From assembly GCA_002189035.1 (NCBI GenBank), contig NEEC01000002.1, forward strand, positions 5,332,001 to 5,396,000: a stretch of DNA of 64,000 nt, in the 5' to 3' direction. The translations under genes and the position numbers were made by a program. Shown here piece by piece: positions 3,891 to 15,551 of this stretch (its first letter is position 1; each line of letters starts with the position of its first letter). The stretch comes from Utricularia gibba. Its lineage: Eukaryota; Plantae; Magnoliophyta. Under the pieces are notes generated by a model. The model ran no database searches and was not told the origin of the DNA. It saw only the letters and a list, made by a program, of their open reading frames with translations.

Positions 3891-4440
3891 GAGTCATTTT
3901 GAAAACTACCCTCTGTAAAAATACCTTTTTAGAAACTACCCATTGTGTGAACTGTGTGCATCTGAATTTAGAAAACTATCCATCTTACTGTTTATATGTA
4001 TATACATATTATAAATGTAATAATTTGTATTTTGTTAATATGCAATATCCATTTTCAATAAACGGAATCTACATACTTTTTATTATAATATTTACAGAAT
4101 TTTTTTTGTTTTATTAAACCTGTATCCATAATATCAAAATTATTAACTAAAAAATATTCATTATAAAAAAAAGAATTGGTTATTATTATATACAAATAAT
4201 GATATATTACTTATTTAAAATAGAAGTTTGAAAAACTTTTTATTAAATTTTTAAGAACAATCTAACTTTTTTTAAATAAAAATTTTAAAAATTTTTGAAA
4301 AAAAATTATTCTGGTTTTTCAAAATCATAAATCTCTATTCTTTCAAATCAATTCTAAAAATTTAAAAGAATTAATTCATTTTTCAAAAATTTTATTATTA
4401 AACATTTTATTATTAAAGTTTCCAAAATTCATATTTCTAG
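3891..4440 (+). repeat. MULE left terminal inverted repeat
   Basis: GAGTCATTTTGAAAACTACC...TCTGAATTTAGAAAA...AAATCATAAATCTCTATTC...TTTTTCAAAAATTTTATTATTAAAC matches the right TIR in inverted orientation. There is one insertion around 4125-4200. Confidence 0.88.
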
Positions 4441-5236
4441 ATTAAAAAAATATCTCCAATTAAACAAAAATGACCCCCCATCAAAAAAATGTTCTCCGTT
4501 ATAAGATACATGACAATTTAATCTCTATTATTAAGTAAACAAAAAGTTACCAAAATAAAACAAAAAAATTCGAGTAATTGGGTACTCACCGCAATCGAGT
4601 AATTGTGGTGACCTACCTATTTTTAAATATTACCTACCTATGTAAATAGTCAAATAAATCATTATAATTATTTGATTCTATGTATGATATTTTAGATTTA
4701 TTTTAAATATCATTAAATTTAAAACAAATACTTGAAAAAATATTTTTTAAATAGTGTAAATAAATTATTTAATACTTTAATTTATAAAAACTATAAGGCA
4801 CATTAATAAACTATAAAAAAATTAATTATAATTAATTTATTATTGAAATTTATTATTTAAATTTATGTGATTGAACCTTTTTATTGAAATAATGAATAGA
4901 TAATATATTTTATTAACTTGAATTTGATCGATAATTAATTAGAAAATAAATTTAGATGATCAAATTAACTATTGAAAAATTATGTGTATTTTACTTAAAT
5001 AGAAATAATATAATATCCAAAAGTATATAATTTATAAAATATTATGATTTTGATTTCATTTAATATCATAAATAAATTATGATCAAATAAATTAAAATGC
5101 TTTATGTTAATTACGATAGTATTATATTAACTTGGATTTTACTATATATAAATAACGTTGAATCCATTTAATTAATTAGATAAAAAGACACAAATTGAAA
5201 TAAGATACATTTAGTAGGGATAAATAGATATTTTCT

Positions 5237-8149
5237 TTACTTGAATGGACTACTAATTCGATCCCATGCTCTCCGTGCTATATTTTTTTTCTTTTTGCGA
5301 CCTTGGCTGGAAGTGGAAGGTATGTTTTCAAAGTCCAAATGAAGGCTGGATGGATGTTCTTGAACAGAGGCACGCGGCGGATGATGGAAATGATCATATA
5401 GTTCCTCTCTTGGAATGTCGACGGATGCTCTATGCATTCGTGGTGGCATAGATGAGGTTGATTCAAATTCTGTTGACATGGTATCCCTTGTAAACTTGTC
5501 TCATCCATGGTCCTCATCCACTGAACCTCTATGCATAGTTGGGGGTGATTCAGCATCAGGTTGATTAGTATATCTCGTTGATTTACCTCGAGTGCCGTGC
5601 CAATGACCCCTATCCATCGACATTTGAAATCGTTTACTACGATACCGGCCTTTACTAATAGCTCTCCGATGTGTTGGATCATGCTTCAGAGTGAATGGCC
5701 CCGGCGCCCAATGAATCTCAGCTCGAAGTGGACGAAATTGTAAGCGAAATGTAGTGATGAGTTGTTGAACCAAAAGCGATGGGTTAACACACATTATCGG
5801 GTCGACATTCAACAATTTACAAGCCTGCGCAACATAGAAATATATTTGTGAATGTTATGTATGATATTAATAGAGGGAGATATTTTCTTCGATAAATACC
5901 TGTTGAGCATGTGAGCATGGTACTCCGTAGTTTTGTCACTTCCCACAACTACAAGTGCCATTTTTCAACCGTACGATACACACATTGTCGTCCGTTGGGT
6001 TACTTTGATGCCTACGGGTTTGTACATGGACGATCATTTCTATGTGATCGTAAACCTCCACTCGCATATGTGGGATAGGCTTATCCCAGTGATCAAATAA
6101 TTTACGCGCTTGTTTGGCCAATGTTTCATTGTTTGATTGAGCTTTCATTGCTTCTTCCAGTCCTTCACAAATGTATTTTTTACATCTTGCAAAAGTGGCC
6201 TGCAAATTTGTAATCATATTAAGTTGATGCTTATAAAAAAATATAAATATAAATGATTGAGATGAAATACTTGCGCAAGTGCAGTAATAGGAAGATGCCG
6301 AGCTCAACGAAGTACTGTATTCATCCCCTCGACTTGATTGGTCGTCATGATGCCAAACCTTCAACATCCATCGAACGATATTGTCCATGTTTCGGGTTTC
6401 ATCTTGGACAAATATGCAAATGCACTTCTATTCTTCTCTTCAATTCTCTTCATATAAGCAGTGAATTTCTCTTTATATCCTGTCAAAGCCGCTTTAATAA
6501 ATAGACTTCTCAAATCTTCAGACTTATAATGATCAAAAAAATTAGAACGAAGGTGACGAAAACAATAACGGTGGCATCCACTCTATTCCTCCATGAAAGC
6601 AGGCACTTGTTTTGCAGCATTTTTTTGACTCATGCCTATCTGAAATAAGGCATGTGGGTTTATCAAGGGCGATGTGAGTTCCTACTTTATCCAAAAACCA
6701 TAACCAAGAATCATTGGTCTCTTCATCAACAACGGTAAAAACTAATGGAAGAAGCTTGCCACTAGGTGATAGAGTTACTGCGATTAGCAACTTGTGTCTA
6801 TAAGTGTTGTATAGATGAGTTGCATCAACTGATATAACCGGTCTTAAATGCTGGTATGCACAAATACATGGACCAAAAGACCAAAACACATAGTGCATAG
6901 TAACACCATCACCTTTGTATTTCCAATCAATCAGTGTTTCAGGATTTTGAATAGCCACCTCATTCAAAAAACTCGAAAGTTTTTGCAAAGATACCTCCCA
7001 AGTACCATAAATGAGTTCGAAAGCTTTATGTAGCCCATACCATGAACGATGATACGGGATTTTGTAACCAGTAGCAGTTTCAACAGCAGTAATTATTGTC
7101 ATCACCTTTGTAACTGTATCTGCTTCCACAAACGGTTTTGCTATCTTCGCAATGTATGTTGAATCCACATTTTTGTGTCAGAAAAAACCCACTCCGAGCC
7201 GTCTACACGTGTGAGGGTCAGTGTGCTTAGTAATTTTCCACTCTCTAATCCTTTTATGATAAGCAGCACGGATTCTCCATTTGCAGTTGGTTTCTTTGTG
7301 ATGTTTACATATCATAGCAAGCACCCCTGGTTCACTATCAACGATTGTGTACTCTTTTCCAATTTTTATTGAAAAGTCTTGGACTGCTCTACGAAAATCT
7401 TCTTTTGTAGAAAACCATTGCCCCTCCGAGAAAATATTAACATAGGCCGGTGAAAGTGGTTCATCTAAAGGGTCTCCCCCTTCTGCCAAAGCAGCCATTG
7501 GTACCCATTATGTATCCCCTAAATCTTCTTCTTGATCTTCATATTCTACCTCAAAATCTAAGTTTTCAGGATCTCCTTCAGGTGGAATATCTGCACCAGG
7601 AACTTCATAATCATTGTTGTAATTTATCATTGAATCACCATCAATATTTGGAGCTGTGCTCACTAGCCATTGGTACCCATTCTACATAATTGTCTTCATT
7701 CTCTTGTAAGAAATCATAGGAGTTGTGCTCACTAACCACCTCATTCAAATATGGTATTTGATAATAACCAAGCGGCTGAGATGAATGTTCTGAAATATAA
7801 ACTCCACTAGAGCTTGCACTGAATCGATGACTATCAAGTATGATAAATAAATCTACCGAAATAGTGGTATGACTAGGGTTGTGCAAAAAGAGTAAATCCA
7901 TTTGAGATGATAGTTGCATATAGCACATTTCGCTGCTTTCATAGTTGAATATTGTACTGAGAGCTGCATATTATATAGAGAGGTTGAAACTTGAATTACC
8001 TCATATAACTCACATTGTAGATCATCCAATGTAGCATCAATGTGAAATTGCATGATTCGTATTGGTGGTTTGTCATAAGAAATGTAACTTCCGTAGTTGA
8101 GTATATTGCCTCCAAAAAATACTCTATATGTAACAAACTCAGAAGCCAT
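5237..8149 (-). pseudogene. MuDRA-like MULE transposase pseudogene (MuDR, MULE DDE and SWIM domains)
   Basis: ORF fragments: FSEGQWFSTKEDFRRAVQDFSIK...CKWRIRA...HTC (MuDR, 7178-7498); YVFWSFGPC...RPVISVDATHL...DEETNDSWLWFL (MULE, 6542-7168); RFGIMTTNQVEGMN...LPITAL; VRLKNGTCSCGK (SWIM, ~5940). It is split over several frames by frameshifts and stops, with a probable intron at ~5826-5900. Confidence 0.92.
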
Positions 8150-9143
8150 GGCGTTGGAAAAGAAAAAGCTTGCAAATTTCTTTGCGGAGCAGAAGAACAG
8201 TGAATTGTAGACACACCCGTTGTGTCATGATTTCTTTAAGGATCCCCCGACAATATAATATGAATAAATTAACAAAATATTATATTAAGTCTTTAAATAT
8301 AGTGGATATAGGTGTACTCCACATTATGTCAATTATTCATTTGAGAAAATGACAAGTTTGTAATTTGGTAATGTAATTACAGTAAGTCTTATTATTTTAA
8401 TTAAATGTAATTCTGTGAAAAATTATACAATATGCAAAAGCTAAATTAAATATATACGATAATTGTAAACATAGTATATTGACGTCGCAATTATTAAAAA
8501 AAACTTTAAACCAACTGTTTTTTTGGATATCCGTAATATTTAGAAGAATACACTTCAATTTAAGTAATTGTTATTATATATTTAATAATATATAAAAAAT
8601 ACATTTGAATTGAATAATTTTTAACATAACAAAATATTAAATGAATTCTTTTAATGTGTGGAATACAACTGTACTCCATCTTGCGTTAATAATGCATCAT
8701 ACAAAACGACAAGATTGTGATTTGAGAATGGAATTACGGTGAGTCTTACTACATGAATAAAATGTAGTTATGTGAAAAAAATAATTACATGGTGCAAAAA
8801 CTAAATCAAAAGCATGCAATGATTGAAAACATGATAAATTATATTTAGGTAGTACTCATTAAGAAAAATTTTCAAAAATTTACATTTTTGAGGCTCTTTT
8901 TACATTTAATAACACATACTATAATATTTCATTTAGAAATTGATATGTTATTATCTTAGATTTGAATTGTAATGATTTATATTTTTTTGAAAACTAGTTT
9001 TTCCATGTTTTTAGATTGATTTTGAGTAAAATACTTATTATCTACACTTTTTATATATAAAATTTCATCATTTCATTGAATAATTACTAAATTAGGTTGA
9101 TCTGCATAGGGTTTTGGGGGTTTAGGGTTTTTTAGGGGTTCGT

Positions 9144-9175
9144 TAGTCACTGTAATTGCTTAATTACAGTGACTA
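9144..9175. promoter_or_regulatory. Spaced palindrome TAGTCACTGTAATT-gctt-AATTACAGTGACTA upstream of the MULE accessory gene
   Basis: Perfect 14-bp arms read directly. Related copies lie at 4586-4611 and 12636-12810. The regulatory role is inferred. Confidence 0.5.
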
Positions 9176-9432
9176 TACAATTTCCTCCGTTCCTGCCCAT
9201 AGAATTCCCACGTAGAAAATTTCACTGCAATTTCCTTCACTAATTTTTTTATTCTTTTTCAGATTTAGCATTCCAAGGCTCATGGGGAATCTAAATTTTC
9301 AGATTTGACTAACATGCACACCATTCCAACATTGACTTCACGAAATTCAATAAATTTTCAAAATCTTTACCTCTATATATGAGAGCATTACACTGACCTT
9401 TAGCTCATTTTGAGCATTCCTTTGTTTCACTT

Positions 9433-11362
9433 ATGGCCCCTAGAATGGATACTTCCCTCAAGCTCAAGGTGCGGTTTGGTGTTCCGTATGAATATCAAAT
9501 GTTCGACAAAATGGGCAATGAGAAGATTACCGATCCATTACTGGAACAGGTCGGTACTAATGGTATCGCTATTTCTACCGAACATTTTCGTTGCGGATTA
9601 TGCTTACCAATCTTGCCATTTATTTTATCAATGCTTCATTGTATTGATGTTCCCCTAGCCCAATTGACCCCAAAATCAATAGGGTATGTTTTAGCCTTCT
9701 TTGAAATTTGCAATGAACTAAATATACCTCTTTATCTTGGCATTTTTTTTGCTATTATCGTATGTGCTTATACCAAAAAAACCAATGGTTATACACTTCG
9801 AGGAAGACCTGGTATTAAGTTGATTAGGGGTTTACGGAGCGGATATGATGATTGGAGAACATCTTTCATATGGGTTGCACTACCATATAATCATCGATTA
9901 GATTTTCCACTAATGTTAATTGGCGGAGATGGCGTTGGTAAGCCAAAAGTTAACAATTTTCTATCAAAAATCTTTTAATTTTGTTATAAATGATTTTAGA
10001 ATTTAAATTTAGTTTGAATTTTTTTTATGAATTGTATGATAATTTATTATAAATTTTATTTTTTGTACCCTTCTTGTTTTGCTAGGTATTTTATGTTTTT
10101 TTAATTAATTTAAATTTTATTAAATTCTTTTTATTTATCATTTGTACTCATATTTATTTTATTCTATGTAGGTATTACTCTATTAGATGTAGAGCAAAAA
10201 AATCACTACTTGAATTTATTTGATGGCAAGACAGTTTCATTTCGAGACATTGAGCCTCGATTTCTAGAAGTTCCTGGAACAAAGAAATTTTTGTGTGATA
10301 CGGTGAGACGTAATTTGCTAAGGAATGATGATGATGTTGTTGAAGATGAAGAACCAGAGCTAAAAACCGTCAATTTACAACATGGAGAAACATCATCATT
10401 TCATGAATCAGTGGTACCAGTTGAAGTAATTTATAATGATCGCCCAATTGCAAGGAAATTGTTTATTGTCGACGTAAATGAGATCTTTTGTGACCTACTA
10501 TCATATAGAACTACTTCAAGAGATAGTCATGTTCGCATCCCGGACATGAAAATATATCATCAAGAAGGTAAAATTATTTATTATTTGATTTCATGGATAT
10601 TCAATTATTTTTTTATTACATTAGTTAACTTTGATTTTTTATTTTAAATTAGCTATCAAAATTAGTTCCCTTACATATTTTTTTGAATATGCAGTGTATT
10701 TGAGACCTTTTGCTAGAGAATTCATGTATTGGTGCCTTTAACACTTTGATGTTGCAATTTGTTCATCACGTGGAGGGTATTATATAATGTTTAGACTATC
10801 ATTATTTTAAAAACTAACACTATTTTTATTAATTATGTTTTCAGGGTTCAATTGTCAGGAATACTTCAATGGATTTTTGGATTTGGTAGACGAAGCCAGT
10901 GGATATTTCAGTGGGATGCATCTTATGTTACTCCAACCGACGTAAAGGTTATTGATAAGGCATTCAAGAAGGTGGTCTTAAAAGAGTTAGCAAAATTTGA
11001 TATGAATATAGTAGTGTTTACAATATTAATAACACATTATTGATAGATGATTCACCTTACAAGTGCATTAAAAATCCGGTAATATATCATTTTTTACATT
11101 TTAAATTTTACAATCTACCTTCTTTTATAACATTTTTGAGTTTAACTTATATTTACAGATGCATACTTGTATTCATCCGGAGTCGTACACTTATGACAAA
11201 CTTGAAGATAATGCACTTGGTGAAGGTGGTGAAATACGTAATTATCTTGAGGGGTTACAGTTGGCACAAGATGTTGAAAATTACTATCGTAGGCATTTTT
11301 TTGGACAAATGCTTATAGATCAGTGTCATCCTTTATTTCCATATTATCGTCAACTATTTTGA
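9433..11362 (+). pseudogene. Chimeric 5-exon gene inside the MULE: Transposase_28 (putative gypsy-type) domain fused to an FCP1/NIF HAD phosphatase-like domain
   Basis: Exons 9433-9937, 10172-10567, 10695-10776, 10845-11078 and 11159-11362, all GT-AG and in phase. Exon 1 has FRCGLCLPILPF...PLAQLTPKS...DDWRTSFIWV. Later exons have KLFIVDVNEIFCD, VYLRPFAREF...FDVAICSS, IFQWD...KKVVLKEL, NTLLIDDSPYKCIKNP and LGEGGEIRNYLEGL...FGQ. There is one in-frame TAA (10739-10741) and one -1 frameshift (~11000); about 473 aa if repaired. Confidence 0.8.
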
Positions 11363-12991
11363 AATGTTTCTATTTGTTTAAGTAAGATCTTTTTTATTTT
11401 AAAATGTATTTTGAGAATTCCAAAAGAATCGTAGGTTTTTGGATGAAAAAAAAATAGGTATTTTTTTAAAAAACTTATTTATTTAAGTTTTATTTGAAAT
11501 AGTTGACATCAATGCTTATCTATATATTTATTTTTAAAAAAATATTTGGATTTTTTCACGTATTATTATTTTTTTTTCATTTTTTCTTTTCTTTTCTATA
11601 ATTATGAATGATAAAATTTTTATATTTTAGTAAAATTGTTTTAATCTATCTTTTTTTATTAATATTTAACTATGCATAATGTGTTAAAAATGTATAATTT
11701 TTATTTGAAGAACCTTATGTACTTAATATTACCTAAATAATTCTATTCATTATTCATAAAAACATTAAAAAATGGTACGAACATGTATAAACAAATTACG
11801 AACAACATTTACGAATATATAAGTCTATTAGATTTATATGATTTATAAAAATAAATAACTATAAACATGTAGTAAAATTCAAATTTCAATGAATTTTGAA
11901 ATAAAATAGCAAAACCATATCTATATATATTTGAAATTTATTTCTTATTGTATATATTTTAAATTAAAAAATATTTTTTATTTCATTCATTACATTTGAG
12001 AAAAAAATCTTTAATATTATTTGAAAGAAAATAACAAAACACGAATTTAAAATATAAAAATAAACAAGATGTCCAAATAACATTTAATGATTAGATGATA
12101 TATAATACAAATTTAAGATAAATAAAAAAGTCAAACCTTCGGAATAATACTTTGACATTTAAAATAAAAATATACACTCAATCTAAACAATACTATAGTG
12201 GATGATGCATAGCAAATATAAAATAAAAAAATAGTAAGTTGATCCAAATAACACTTTAAACTTAAGTAATACATAATACAAATTTCAAAGAAAATAAAAG
12301 ACACTTGATTCAAATAAGAAATAAAGATTAAATGATATATGATATAAATTTAAAATAAAAACATAGGTATTCTAAAAAGAATTTGATGCAAATAACATCC
12401 AATGTTCAAATGATTTATATAAGAAAATATATCACATATTCATTATTTCAATAAAATGGTTTAAAGAATTAAATAATAAATATAATATTTTAAAGTAAAT
12501 TTATAATTTTTTAAGTGTTTATAAATTAAAATACTAAATAATTTATTTATCATGCTTTAAAAATATTTATTCGACTATTTTCTTAATTTAACAATATTTA
12601 GAGTAAATGTAAAATATTATCTACGAAATTGAACAATTGCGGTGACTTATGTTTTTTAAAATATTGTTTTTATAGTTACCGCAATCAAGTAATTACATGG
12701 ATTTTCCTATTTTTAAATATTATTTACGTAGTCACCGTAATCGGCTAATTACAGTAACTTAACCATTTGAAAATATTATTTACATAGTCACCGCAATCGA
12801 TTATACTACAATTAGAGCTGGTACGGGTGGGACTGGTACGAGTACGAGTCCGACCTGCCAGATCAAAAATTAAGTGGCTGAGTCGGCGGGTCAAACTTGT
12901 GCGGGTAAAGTGCTTGACCCGACTCGTACCCGGGTCATGCTGAGTTGGTGAGGACACACAGACGTGGGTTACATATCCCACGCCCCACGTC

Positions 12992-13095
12992 CGTGTGTGA
13001 TGCTGAGGACTACGCCCGTGTGAGTTGCCGTTGGACGTGGGTTCGTGTGTGATGCTGAGGACTATGCCCGTGTGAGTTGCCGATGGACGTGGGTA
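12992..13095. repeat. Two tandem copies of a 52-bp GC-rich unit
   Basis: CGTGTGTGATGCTGAGGACTAYGCCCGTGTGAGTTGCCGWTGGACGTGGGTW at 12992-13043 and 13044-13095, with 3 mismatches. Confidence 0.9.
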
Positions 13096-13249
13096 ACACA
13101 TGAAATTGTGTTTACTTATAATTTTTATGTAAATCAATTAATATAATTTAAATAATTTAAACATCATTAATTCATTTTTGTATATTTAATTCATAAGAAT
13201 TTACAATTATATTGTTCATTTTATTATAGACATTTTGAATTTAGAAATA

Positions 13250-13743
13250 TTTGGAAATATGAAATTTTGAATCTTTAATAATAAAGTGTTTAATAATAAA
13301 ATTTTTGAAAAATGAATTAATATTTTTAAATTTTTAGAATTGATTTGAAGGAATAGAGATTTATGATTCTGAAAAACTAGAATAATTGTTTTTCAAAACC
13401 TTTATAGAAATTTATTTTTTAAAAAAAATTTAGATTGTACTGACAATTTAATAAAAAGTTTTTGAAACTTATATTTTAAATAAATAATATATTATTATTT
13501 TTGTGTCAGGTTTTATAAAATAAAAATATTTCATGTAAATATTATGATAAAAAATATGTAAATTCTATTTTTTTGAAAATAGATATTTTATATTAATAAA
13601 ATACAAATTATTATATTTATAATACGCATATATACATATAAACATTAAGATGAATAATTTTCTAAATTCAGATACACACAATTAACACGGTGGTTAGTTT
13701 TCTAAAGAGGTATTTTTATATTGAATAGTTTTAAAAATGACAC
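13250..13743 (-). repeat. MULE right terminal inverted repeat
   Basis: Reverse complement begins GTGTCATTTTTAAAACTATTC...TCTGAATTTAGAAAATT and is collinear with 3891-4440. The inner boundary is approximate. Confidence 0.88.
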
Positions 13744-14381: not shown

Positions 14382-15551
14382 ATGGGCTGTTCTGCTTCTC
14401 GTTCTGCTGATTTTGTTGCTCATTGTCAAAAGCCTGAGTCGAATGCTTCTTCTTTGCACTGGAAAACTCTGTTACAGTCACCCTGCAACTCGTTTTCTGA
14501 CTTGAATTCGACTCCGGCTTCGCGGACTCGTTCTCTTCTGACCCCTGTAGTGCACCACCCGCCTGTGAGAAAAGGGGATTCGAATCACTTTGTTGCTCTC
14601 ACGTCCACTACCTATGGCTCGCTTTTCCTCCTCAATCCACCTAACTCGAGTCCGAATATCGAGACCCAAGGAGATAAGATGTCACAAGAGGAACAAATTG
14701 GGGGCTCTGCGAAATGTGTGTCCCCTGTTTCTGTTGTCAACACATGGGAGCTCATGGAGGGCCTTGATGACAACGAATGCACCTTCAAAAGAGTTGATTG
14801 CCACAAGGGGAATCCTGAAAGTGAGATGAATGCAGCTGACATGGCGAAATCTCTTGAGTTTGTGGAGCATCCGGTTCCCAGGCCCTTGTGGGAACACTTA
14901 CATGAAGAATCACTCTTTCCTAGAATCGATGGGCATGTGGGTTACAGAAAGGCATCATCAATGAGGAGAAAAGTTGGATGTGGGAGGCCAATGGAAATTC
15001 CAAATCATAGAAAGAATGATGAGCCTCTCCCTTCACATAATGCCATGGAATCCAATGGTAGTGATGAATTCTGTTGTTTGTGGGGCGGTGCAGAGGATAG
15101 AATAGTGCTTTACTACACAACTTTGAGGGGCATTCGAAAAACATATGAAGATTGTTGTGCTGTTCGAAATATTCTGAGGGGATTCAGAGTACCTGTGGAT
15201 GAAAGAGATATCTCCATGGACAGAGCTTACAGAGCCGAGCTGCAGCAGGCTCTAAACTCAGAAGCTGTGAGCTTGCCGCAAGTGTTCGTAAGAGGGAAAT
15301 GCATCGGTGGAGCTGAGGACATTAAGCAGCTCAACGAGGCCGGAGATTTAGCCAAACTACTAGAAGGCTTTCCATTCAGCGACTCAGGATTTTCTTGCGA
15401 GTTCTGTGGCGATGCTCGATTTGTTCCATGTCCCAATTGTAATGGAAGTCGAAAGGTTTACGAGGAGGAAGATGGGTCGCTGAGGAGATGCCCTGACTGC
15501 AATGAGAATGGATTGGTTCGATGCGCCTCTTGCCGCCTTTCATCAGACTAG
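14382..15551 (+). CDS. Glutaredoxin-domain protein with C-terminal Cys-rich region (plant GRX-like, At5g39865-type), 389 aa, single exon
   Basis: Intact ORF starting MGCSAS. It has the GRX-like block RIVLYYTTLRGIRKTYEDC...VDERDISMD...LPQVFVRGKCIGG followed by CEFCGDARFVPCPNCNGSRK...RCPDCNENGLVRCASC. Confidence 0.93.
   Translation: MGCSASRSADFVAHCQKPESNASSLHWKTLLQSPCNSFSDLNSTPASRTRSLLTPVVHHPPVRKGDSNHFVALTSTTYGSLFLLNPPNSSPNIETQGDKMSQEEQIGGSAKCVSPVSVVNTWELMEGLDDNECTFKRVDCHKGNPESEMNAADMAKSLEFVEHPVPRPLWEHLHEESLFPRIDGHVGYRKASSMRRKVGCGRPMEIPNHRKNDEPLPSHNAMESNGSDEFCCLWGGAEDRIVLYYTTLRGIRKTYEDCCAVRNILRGFRVPVDERDISMDRAYRAELQQALNSEAVSLPQVFVRGKCIGGAEDIKQLNEAGDLAKLLEGFPFSDSGFSCEFCGDARFVPCPNCNGSRKVYEEEDGSLRRCPDCNENGLVRCASCRLSSD

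Follow-up and report, generated by a model that had tools for sequence, protein, structure and literature searches.

Introduction

Several plant DNA transposons carry an accessory gene beside the one for their transposase, such as mudrB in maize MuDR, VANB and the anti-silencing factor VANC in Arabidopsis VANDAL21, and the Myb-like ORF1 of PIF/Harbinger elements. To our knowledge, a role is known for only a handful of the accessory proteins of plant DNA transposons, among them VANC. The FCP1/NIF family of haloacid dehalogenase (HAD)-type phosphatases, which also matters here, includes UBLCP1, a nuclear proteasome phosphatase, and TIM50, a non-catalytic member. The domain Transposase_28 (PF04195; TRP28) occurs in antisense open reading frames (ORFs) of Retand elements and has been predicted to bind DNA (PMC11963269); it is present in 23% of Retand elements (PMC6317226). 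Partner domains of TRP28 named in these papers are topoisomerase 2, Mis12, SMC, and others, NIF not being among them (PMC11963269; PMC6317226). Here, a gene is described in which TRP28 and an NIF domain are combined. It lies at positions 9433–11362, on the plus strand, of a 64,000-nt stretch of DNA from Utricularia gibba (assembly GCA_002189035.1, contig NEEC01000002.1, positions 5,332,001 to 5,396,000 of the forward strand; the whole stretch is referred to as the window), within a Mutator-like element (MULE). We consider it probable that a many-copy family of MuDR-type MULEs has this gene as its second (accessory) gene, and that the window contains a dead copy of it.

New findings are the introns shared with a host gene, a D-x-N motif that is family wide, and the identification of UBLCP1 as the nearest solved relative by sequence. 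The literature searched contained no description of the fusion and nothing that links PF04195 or MULEs with NIF/FCP1 domains, which agrees with an earlier interpretation made from the letters of the window (the sequence-only reading), whose author knew of no description of this architecture.

Results

Gene model and coding signal

The sequence-only reading had proposed a fusion gene of five exons and four introns inside a DNA transposon, with an N-terminal PF04195 and a C-terminal PF03031 (NIF) domain and a repaired product of ∼473 residues. This observation was confirmed. Five exons, separated by four GT..AG introns, combine into one reading frame (Table 1), and the product, with a placeholder at each of two breaks, has 473 residues. 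In the window, which is AT-rich plant DNA, the G+C content of the exons (0.34–0.38) stands out against that of the introns (0.15–0.17). The joined coding frame contains one stop in 472 codons, compared with 26 (23+3) and 50 (34+16) in the other two frames; when the same letters were shuffled 500 times, the mean number of stops was 34 and the minimum 19. The phosphatase-like part would not be translatable alone because exon 2 lacks a Met upstream of the first HAD motif (motif I). No further copies of the accessory gene were found within the window.

The TRP28 exon and the linker

Exon 1 matched PF04195 with 30.9 bits (E 3.3e-7; residues 48–107), which is above the gathering cut-off of 26.2, and in a protein-language-model Atlas it was placed beside streptophyte PF04195 clusters (0.96–0.97). 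Prediction of its structure from the single sequence was unusable (predicted local distance difference test, pLDDT, 40). A metagenome scan with exon 1 found no relative. Word searches with the exon 1 frame and with the second part of exon 4 returned no match either, their length window (0.55–1.75× the query length) leaving out fused proteins of ∼470 residues. A retrotransposon origin of the TRP28 exon is suggested only by the kind of element in which PF04195 is on record (PMC11963269; PMC6317226).

The linker in exon 2 (residues 169–257) had no detectable relatives in an exhaustive protein search. Two bacterial repeat proteins that matched exon 2 in this search were rejected as spurious, as their scores arose from summed repeats.

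The phosphatase-like domain

For comparison with the NIF profile, the exons were joined and read through with an X at both breaks (stretches of up to 145 residues). When its stop was replaced by X, exon 3 by itself had NIF as its sole Pfam match (15 bits; profile positions 37–61). The C-terminus of exon 2 joined to exon 3 reached 19.7 bits (profile positions 4–61), and exons 3–5 together reached 37.3 bits (E 2.9e-9; profile positions 37–159 of 160), well above the cut-off of 21.8. The NIF score thus grows as spliced exons are joined, and the alignment is collinear over junctions 2, 3, and 4; therefore, these splice sites are supported, as is the domain itself. None of the single exons reached the NIF cut-off in Pfam, and against the PDB they gave no matches or chance ones. 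Placement of exon 5 and of the C-terminus of exon 2 in the Protein Atlas was uninformative, and an exact look-up showed that the window proteins are absent from the protein collection.

Homologues were obtained in two ways. A word search with the X-joined exons 3–5 found P0003, a PF03031 protein of 176 residues with 36% identity. A pattern scan of Joint Genome Institute (JGI) metagenomes yielded 120 loci, and homologues were present in 85 of the 124 loci fetched in all. Since the metagenome loci were fetched with a nine-residue pattern from the window gene, this motif is shared by construction, and the remaining alignment is independent of it. Against a profile built from 20 homologues of other organisms, the read-through scored 129.8 bits, and none of 200 shuffles reached an E value of 10.

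Motif I of the domain reads D-V-N-E-I: the nucleophilic Asp is kept, and the second Asp is replaced by Asn, so that the sequence departs from the D-x-D-x-(T/V) signature. The same D-x-N occurs in P0003 and in four metagenome homologues, L068, L070, L047, and L016 (as D-x-N-G), and for this reason it is counted, judged by its distribution, as a trait of the subfamily and not as decay of this copy; the sequence-only reading had likewise called the first motif of the matched plant subfamily non-canonical. The Ser of motif II (S-S after a hydrophobic strand), the Lys of motif III (K-x-x-x-L-K-E-L), and the two Asp of motif IV (L-I-D-D-S-P) are present, and they align to invariant or nearly invariant columns in the 20 homologues.

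When the family profile was compared with the PDB, UBLCP1 was the only match at E < 0.01 (E 2e-7). A fold was predicted for the homologue L070, not for the window protein, with a pLDDT of 88.6; it is of the FCP1/SCP type and matches CTDNEP1, SCP1-3, TIM50, UBLCP1, and Fcp1 about equally well (template-modelling score, TM, 0.61–0.68, normalised to the model). The suggested link to phosphatases of the C-terminal domain (CTD) of RNA polymerase II is therefore not specific, as the sequence finds UBLCP1 and the fold is equally near to CTDNEP1, SCP1-3, TIM50, and UBLCP1.

Origin from a host gene

The most informative homologue is L068, a 167-kb contig (G+C 0.36) with an intron-bearing NIF-like gene. 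A neighbouring gene on it encodes VARLMGL and DUF4378 domains, and the contig contains neither transposase nor TRP28; because of this plant-domain neighbour and the lack of both transposon features, L068 is taken as an ordinary land-plant cellular gene. Its spliced product aligns with residues 258–472 of the window protein at 36% identity (140 bits), and similarity of the window protein to the NIF homologues begins at residue 258 or 263 in the alignments to P0003 and L068. The three introns within the phosphatase-like part all coincide with introns of L068 in position and phase (Table 1), the exon between introns 2 and 3 has 82 nt in both genes, and the tail encoded by exon 5 is 41% identical to the last exon of L068. 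Judged by this gene structure, the phosphatase-like part was copied from a host gene family as genomic DNA and not as a retrocopy, because L068 has an intron of matching phase at the site of each of the three. The host FCP1-like origin that had been claimed for this part, for which intron positions had been named as a check, is thereby supported. L068 has two extra introns compared with the window gene, and its N-terminal exon is unrelated to TRP28 and to the linker of the window gene. This long exon (positions 2002–2979 of the L068 contig) encodes about four repeats of a ∼50-residue unit and has no Pfam match.

TRP28-like sequence was found in none of the 124 fetched loci. In a maximum-likelihood tree, the transposon domain groups with L068 and its relatives (support 99/98), and the marine algal and virus-like clades are separate from this group. 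Among intron-free genes, the paralogues of L070, L013, and L065 stand closest in this tree to the transposon domain and L068. These NIF-like genes (L070, 6047–7489; PF03031, 70 bits) lie in tandem pairs and without introns on contigs of low G+C content, which are probably moss associated, judged by their accession series.

P0003 is encoded on densely packed, intron-free metagenome contigs, and a PHO4 phosphate transporter is encoded on a related contig. Because of this packing and the transporter, contigs of this type (L001–L004) are possibly algal-virus genomes of the prasinovirus type that bear a member of the host family. The NIF-like genes on L001–L004 are short, intron-free, and densely packed, and contain D-x-N and L-L-I-D-D-S-P-Y-K.

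Copies in the same species and decay of this copy

Contigs of the read archive were taken from three DNA runs labelled as the same organism and from one labelled "plant metagenome", and were aligned at a likeness of at least 80% over 2.2 kb. The three DNA runs contained 250, 506, and 42 contig pieces of the accessory gene, the identity of which ranged from more than 99% to less than 90%; up to 13 distinct contigs were found at one place. One contig of 726 nt, 12–17% diverged, contains both exon 1 and exon 2, which makes the fusion older than the copy in the window. Judged from these copies, the fusion is a family-level gene and not a one-off chimera. In run X4, the differences over 9300–11500 were nearly all C>T (125) and G>A (122), compared with 3–15 for each other type, a pattern that resembles a library treated with bisulfite or methylated copies that are extremely deaminated.

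The copy in the window is a dead remnant of a once-open gene. Both lesions claimed from its sequence (a TAA at 10739 and a −1 shift near 11000) are there, and the shift could be placed at about 10991–11000. Neither belongs to all copies: contigs from another copy join at 10740 with upstream sequence that reads a sense codon in place of the TAA, and contigs of other copies have one extra base behind 10991 (two contigs in run X5, one in run X1). The best-supported exonic differences from the other contigs number 26; 19 of them alter an amino acid and 7 are silent, which is about the neutral expectation. Family-invariant residues, such as the Trp of a W-S-S motif, are lost in this copy, and other copies keep them. 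With two frame-breaking lesions only, against 24 stops in the transposase frame, the accessory gene is lightly damaged compared with the much-broken transposase, as the sequence-only reading had held.

The MULE

The element is a MULE of the autonomous type, in which long terminal inverted repeats (TIRs) enclose a MuDR-type transposase (Table 1). Its layout is compact, with two genes, the accessory gene lying between the transposase and the right end and pointing away from the transposase. One of the 24 stops of the main transposase frame, some of which may be intronic, lies at 7178–7180 between both domains. The SWIM motif (C-x-C...C-x-H; 5936–5990, minus strand) contains an in-frame stop near 5936, between the C-x-C and C-x-H pairs, at a site which we take to be a Trp in other MuDR-type transposases. 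In the region between the two divergent genes, a TATA-like sequence (CTATATAT) is situated ∼53 nt 5′ of the ATG of the accessory gene, by which a putative promoter is placed there. Target-site duplications of 8–11 bp were not recognized, the nine bases outside both MULE ends being different, which age or slightly misplaced ends could explain.

A perfect palindrome of 26 nt is located upstream of the accessory gene (9147–9172), and two diverged copies of it are present in the sub-terminal region at the right end of the element (12673–12712 and 12729–12768; two matches, compared with none expected by chance). These palindromes are, speculatively, candidate protein-binding sites of the element.

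Two tandem units of 52 nt, 94% alike and G+C-rich, occupy 12989–13092 in the right part of the MULE, which elsewhere is AT-rich, and they overlap a minus-strand ORF of 130 residues (12745–13137) without a Pfam match. Just outside the MULE (14382–15551), an intact single-exon host gene encodes a glutaredoxin-domain protein (PF00462 and the GRXCR1/2 C-terminal domain), the exact sequence of which is absent from the protein collection.

Table 1. The MULE and its accessory gene: coordinates in the window.
Feature	Position	Strand	Description
Left TIR	3893–4442	.	∼550 bp; several collinear repeat pairs, 75–88% complementary to right end
MuDR-type transposase remains	5278–8149	−	PF03108 DBD_Tnp_Mut, 7178–7498; PF10551 MULE, 6542–7168
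Intergenic region	8150–9432	.	Between divergent transposase and accessory gene
Exon 1	9433–9937	+	Start codon and TRP28 (PF04195) domain
Intron 1	9938–10171	+	GT..AG, G+C 0.15; predicted; joins TRP28 exon to remainder
Exon 2	10172–10567	+	Linker (residues 169–257), then start of NIF domain with motif I (D-V-N-E-I)
Intron 2	10568–10694	+	Phase 1, directly 5′ of V-Y-x-R-P-F; shared with L068 (position, phase)
Exon 3	10695–10776	+	82 nt; holds premature stop
Lesion 1	10739–10741	+	In-frame TAA in exon 3
Intron 3	10777–10844	+	Phase 2, in second codon after S-S-R; shared with L068 (position, phase)
Exon 4	10845–11078	+	HAD motifs III (Lys) and IV (D-D in L-I-D-D-S-P); frameshift
Lesion 2	10991–11000	+	−1 frameshift at A run in exon 4; frame switches between 10998 and 11001
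Intron 4	11079–11158	+	Phase 0, between N-P and M-H; shared with L068 (position, phase)
Exon 5	11159–11362	+	End of NIF domain, family-specific C-terminal tail, stop TGA (11360–11362)
Right TIR	13249–13741	.	Pairs with 3893–4442 (repeat search)

Discussion

The history that would best explain these observations begins with the HAD part of a host land-plant gene, which would have been taken into the transposon as genomic DNA, introns included, and joined to TRP28 via a unique linker to yield a protein of ∼473 residues. The family version would be an open, spliced gene. After insertion, the copy in the window would have decayed together with its transposase, through a nonsense codon, a frameshift, and private substitutions that mostly change amino acids. 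The protein itself may have been a nuclear helper of the element: TRP28, for which DNA binding has been predicted (PMC11963269), would bring it to the DNA or chromatin of the element, and the HAD domain would dephosphorylate a host protein by which expression or mobility of the element is controlled, or would do no more than bind the phosphate on it. Any such specific role of the protein would have to be held with far less confidence than the assignment of the gene as a dead accessory gene of a MULE family.

Some observations weigh against this assignment. Intron 1, which forms the fusion junction, is a predicted one, backed only by its canonical sites, the open frame, its low G+C content, and the Met-less exon 2. 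The one RNA-labelled run that was compared (X11) gave no matching contig, and the sampled words were absent from the RNA runs, which is not proof of silence. The branch of the transposon domain in the tree is long (1.98), so that its placement is less sure. No fused TRP28–NIF protein was found outside this genome, in word searches that could not see proteins of ∼470 residues. Furthermore, D-x-N may entail low or no catalytic activity.

The fusion could also be neutral cargo, i.e., a host-gene capture in the style of Pack-MULEs that landed behind a TRP28 exon and was copied passively without ever serving the element. It is well known that MULEs acquire fragments of host genes (e.g., PMC4858842; PMC6446971), the private changes of this copy (19 non-synonymous to 7 synonymous) look neutral, and no expression was seen, the RNA-labelled run being without a contig. 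We nevertheless regard this explanation as unlikely, because the captured domain is complete, with all introns, the right phases, and an open frame (1 stop compared with 23–34 in the other frames of the same block), and because the element, unlike Pack-MULEs, has its own transposase. Moreover, copies that are 10–18% apart retain the gene, each lesion is absent from some copies, and family-invariant residues that are lost here are kept in other copies. The compact two-gene layout, with the accessory gene between the transposase and the right end, speaks against a gene foreign to the MULE, whether an independent small mobile unit, a host gene nested by chance, or a cassette passed from one transposon superfamily to another. 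The gene is not bracketed by terminal or direct repeats that would mark a nested insertion (the best pair being 37 nt at 70%), and the depth of the contigs is continuous over 9300–11500, which makes such a foreign origin very improbable.

The shared introns demonstrate common descent at the level of DNA but not its direction, and plant genes of the L068 type could accordingly descend from the transposon gene by domestication. There is hardly any likelihood of that, given that the TRP28-free family occurs widely, in green algae, on algal-virus-like contigs, and in moss-associated samples, that L068 differs by two additional introns and by an N-terminus of unrelated sequence, and that TRP28-like sequence occurred in 0 of 124 loci. 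Capture of the host domain by the MULE, and its use as an accessory gene, is thus the explanation preferred here.

A wider interpretation, which we put forward with little confidence, is that TRP28–NIF proteins constitute an undescribed class of transposon helpers of several DNA-transposon superfamilies in this plant lineage. TRP28 would recognize DNA of the element, e.g., the palindromes; by dephosphorylation or sequestration of a nuclear host factor, the UBLCP1-like HAD domain would allow the element to escape silencing or to be transcribed. The polymerase CTD, the proteasome, or a component of silencing would be candidate targets under this doubtful premise.

What the window contains is only a fossil of the gene; it is the family that deserves interest. 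TRP28 is a widespread transposon-linked domain without an assigned function, and its fusion to a host-derived phosphatase-like module suggests a partner activity that can be tested. Should intact copies be expressed, they would offer a route to the binding target of TRP28 and to the host phosphoprotein touched by the transposon. The family also exemplifies how a host-gene capture that is faithful in exons and introns turned into a gene of the element instead of decaying as cargo.

Compared with the described FCP1/SCP/NIF HAD phosphatases (SCP1-3, CTDNEP1, FCP1, and UBLCP1), the phosphatase-like part retains PF03031, the nucleophile of motif I, and motifs II–IV; the whole subfamily differs from them in having Asn at the second Asp of motif I, and there is no BRCT, ubiquitin-like, or membrane part. 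With the TRP28 antisense ORFs of Retand/Tat Ty3-gypsy elements, the gene shares the same Pfam domain, above the curated cut-off, and the status of an extra gene of a transposable element, but here the element is a DNA transposon (a MULE), the gene is spliced, and TRP28 is fused to a phosphatase-like domain. Like mudrB, VANB/VANC, and the ORF1 of Harbinger, as they are generally known, it is a second gene beside the transposase and specific for an element family, and the palindromes at 9147 and 12732 in non-coding parts are reminiscent of the target motifs of VANC, as these are generally known. The likeness to these genes is one of description, and the domain content (TRP28 and NIF) is different. 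As in Pack-MULEs, host genomic DNA with introns is found inside a MULE; what sets this element apart from them is that remains of its transposase are present, and that the captured domain is complete, continues the frame of a domain of transposon type, and is kept across diverged copies.

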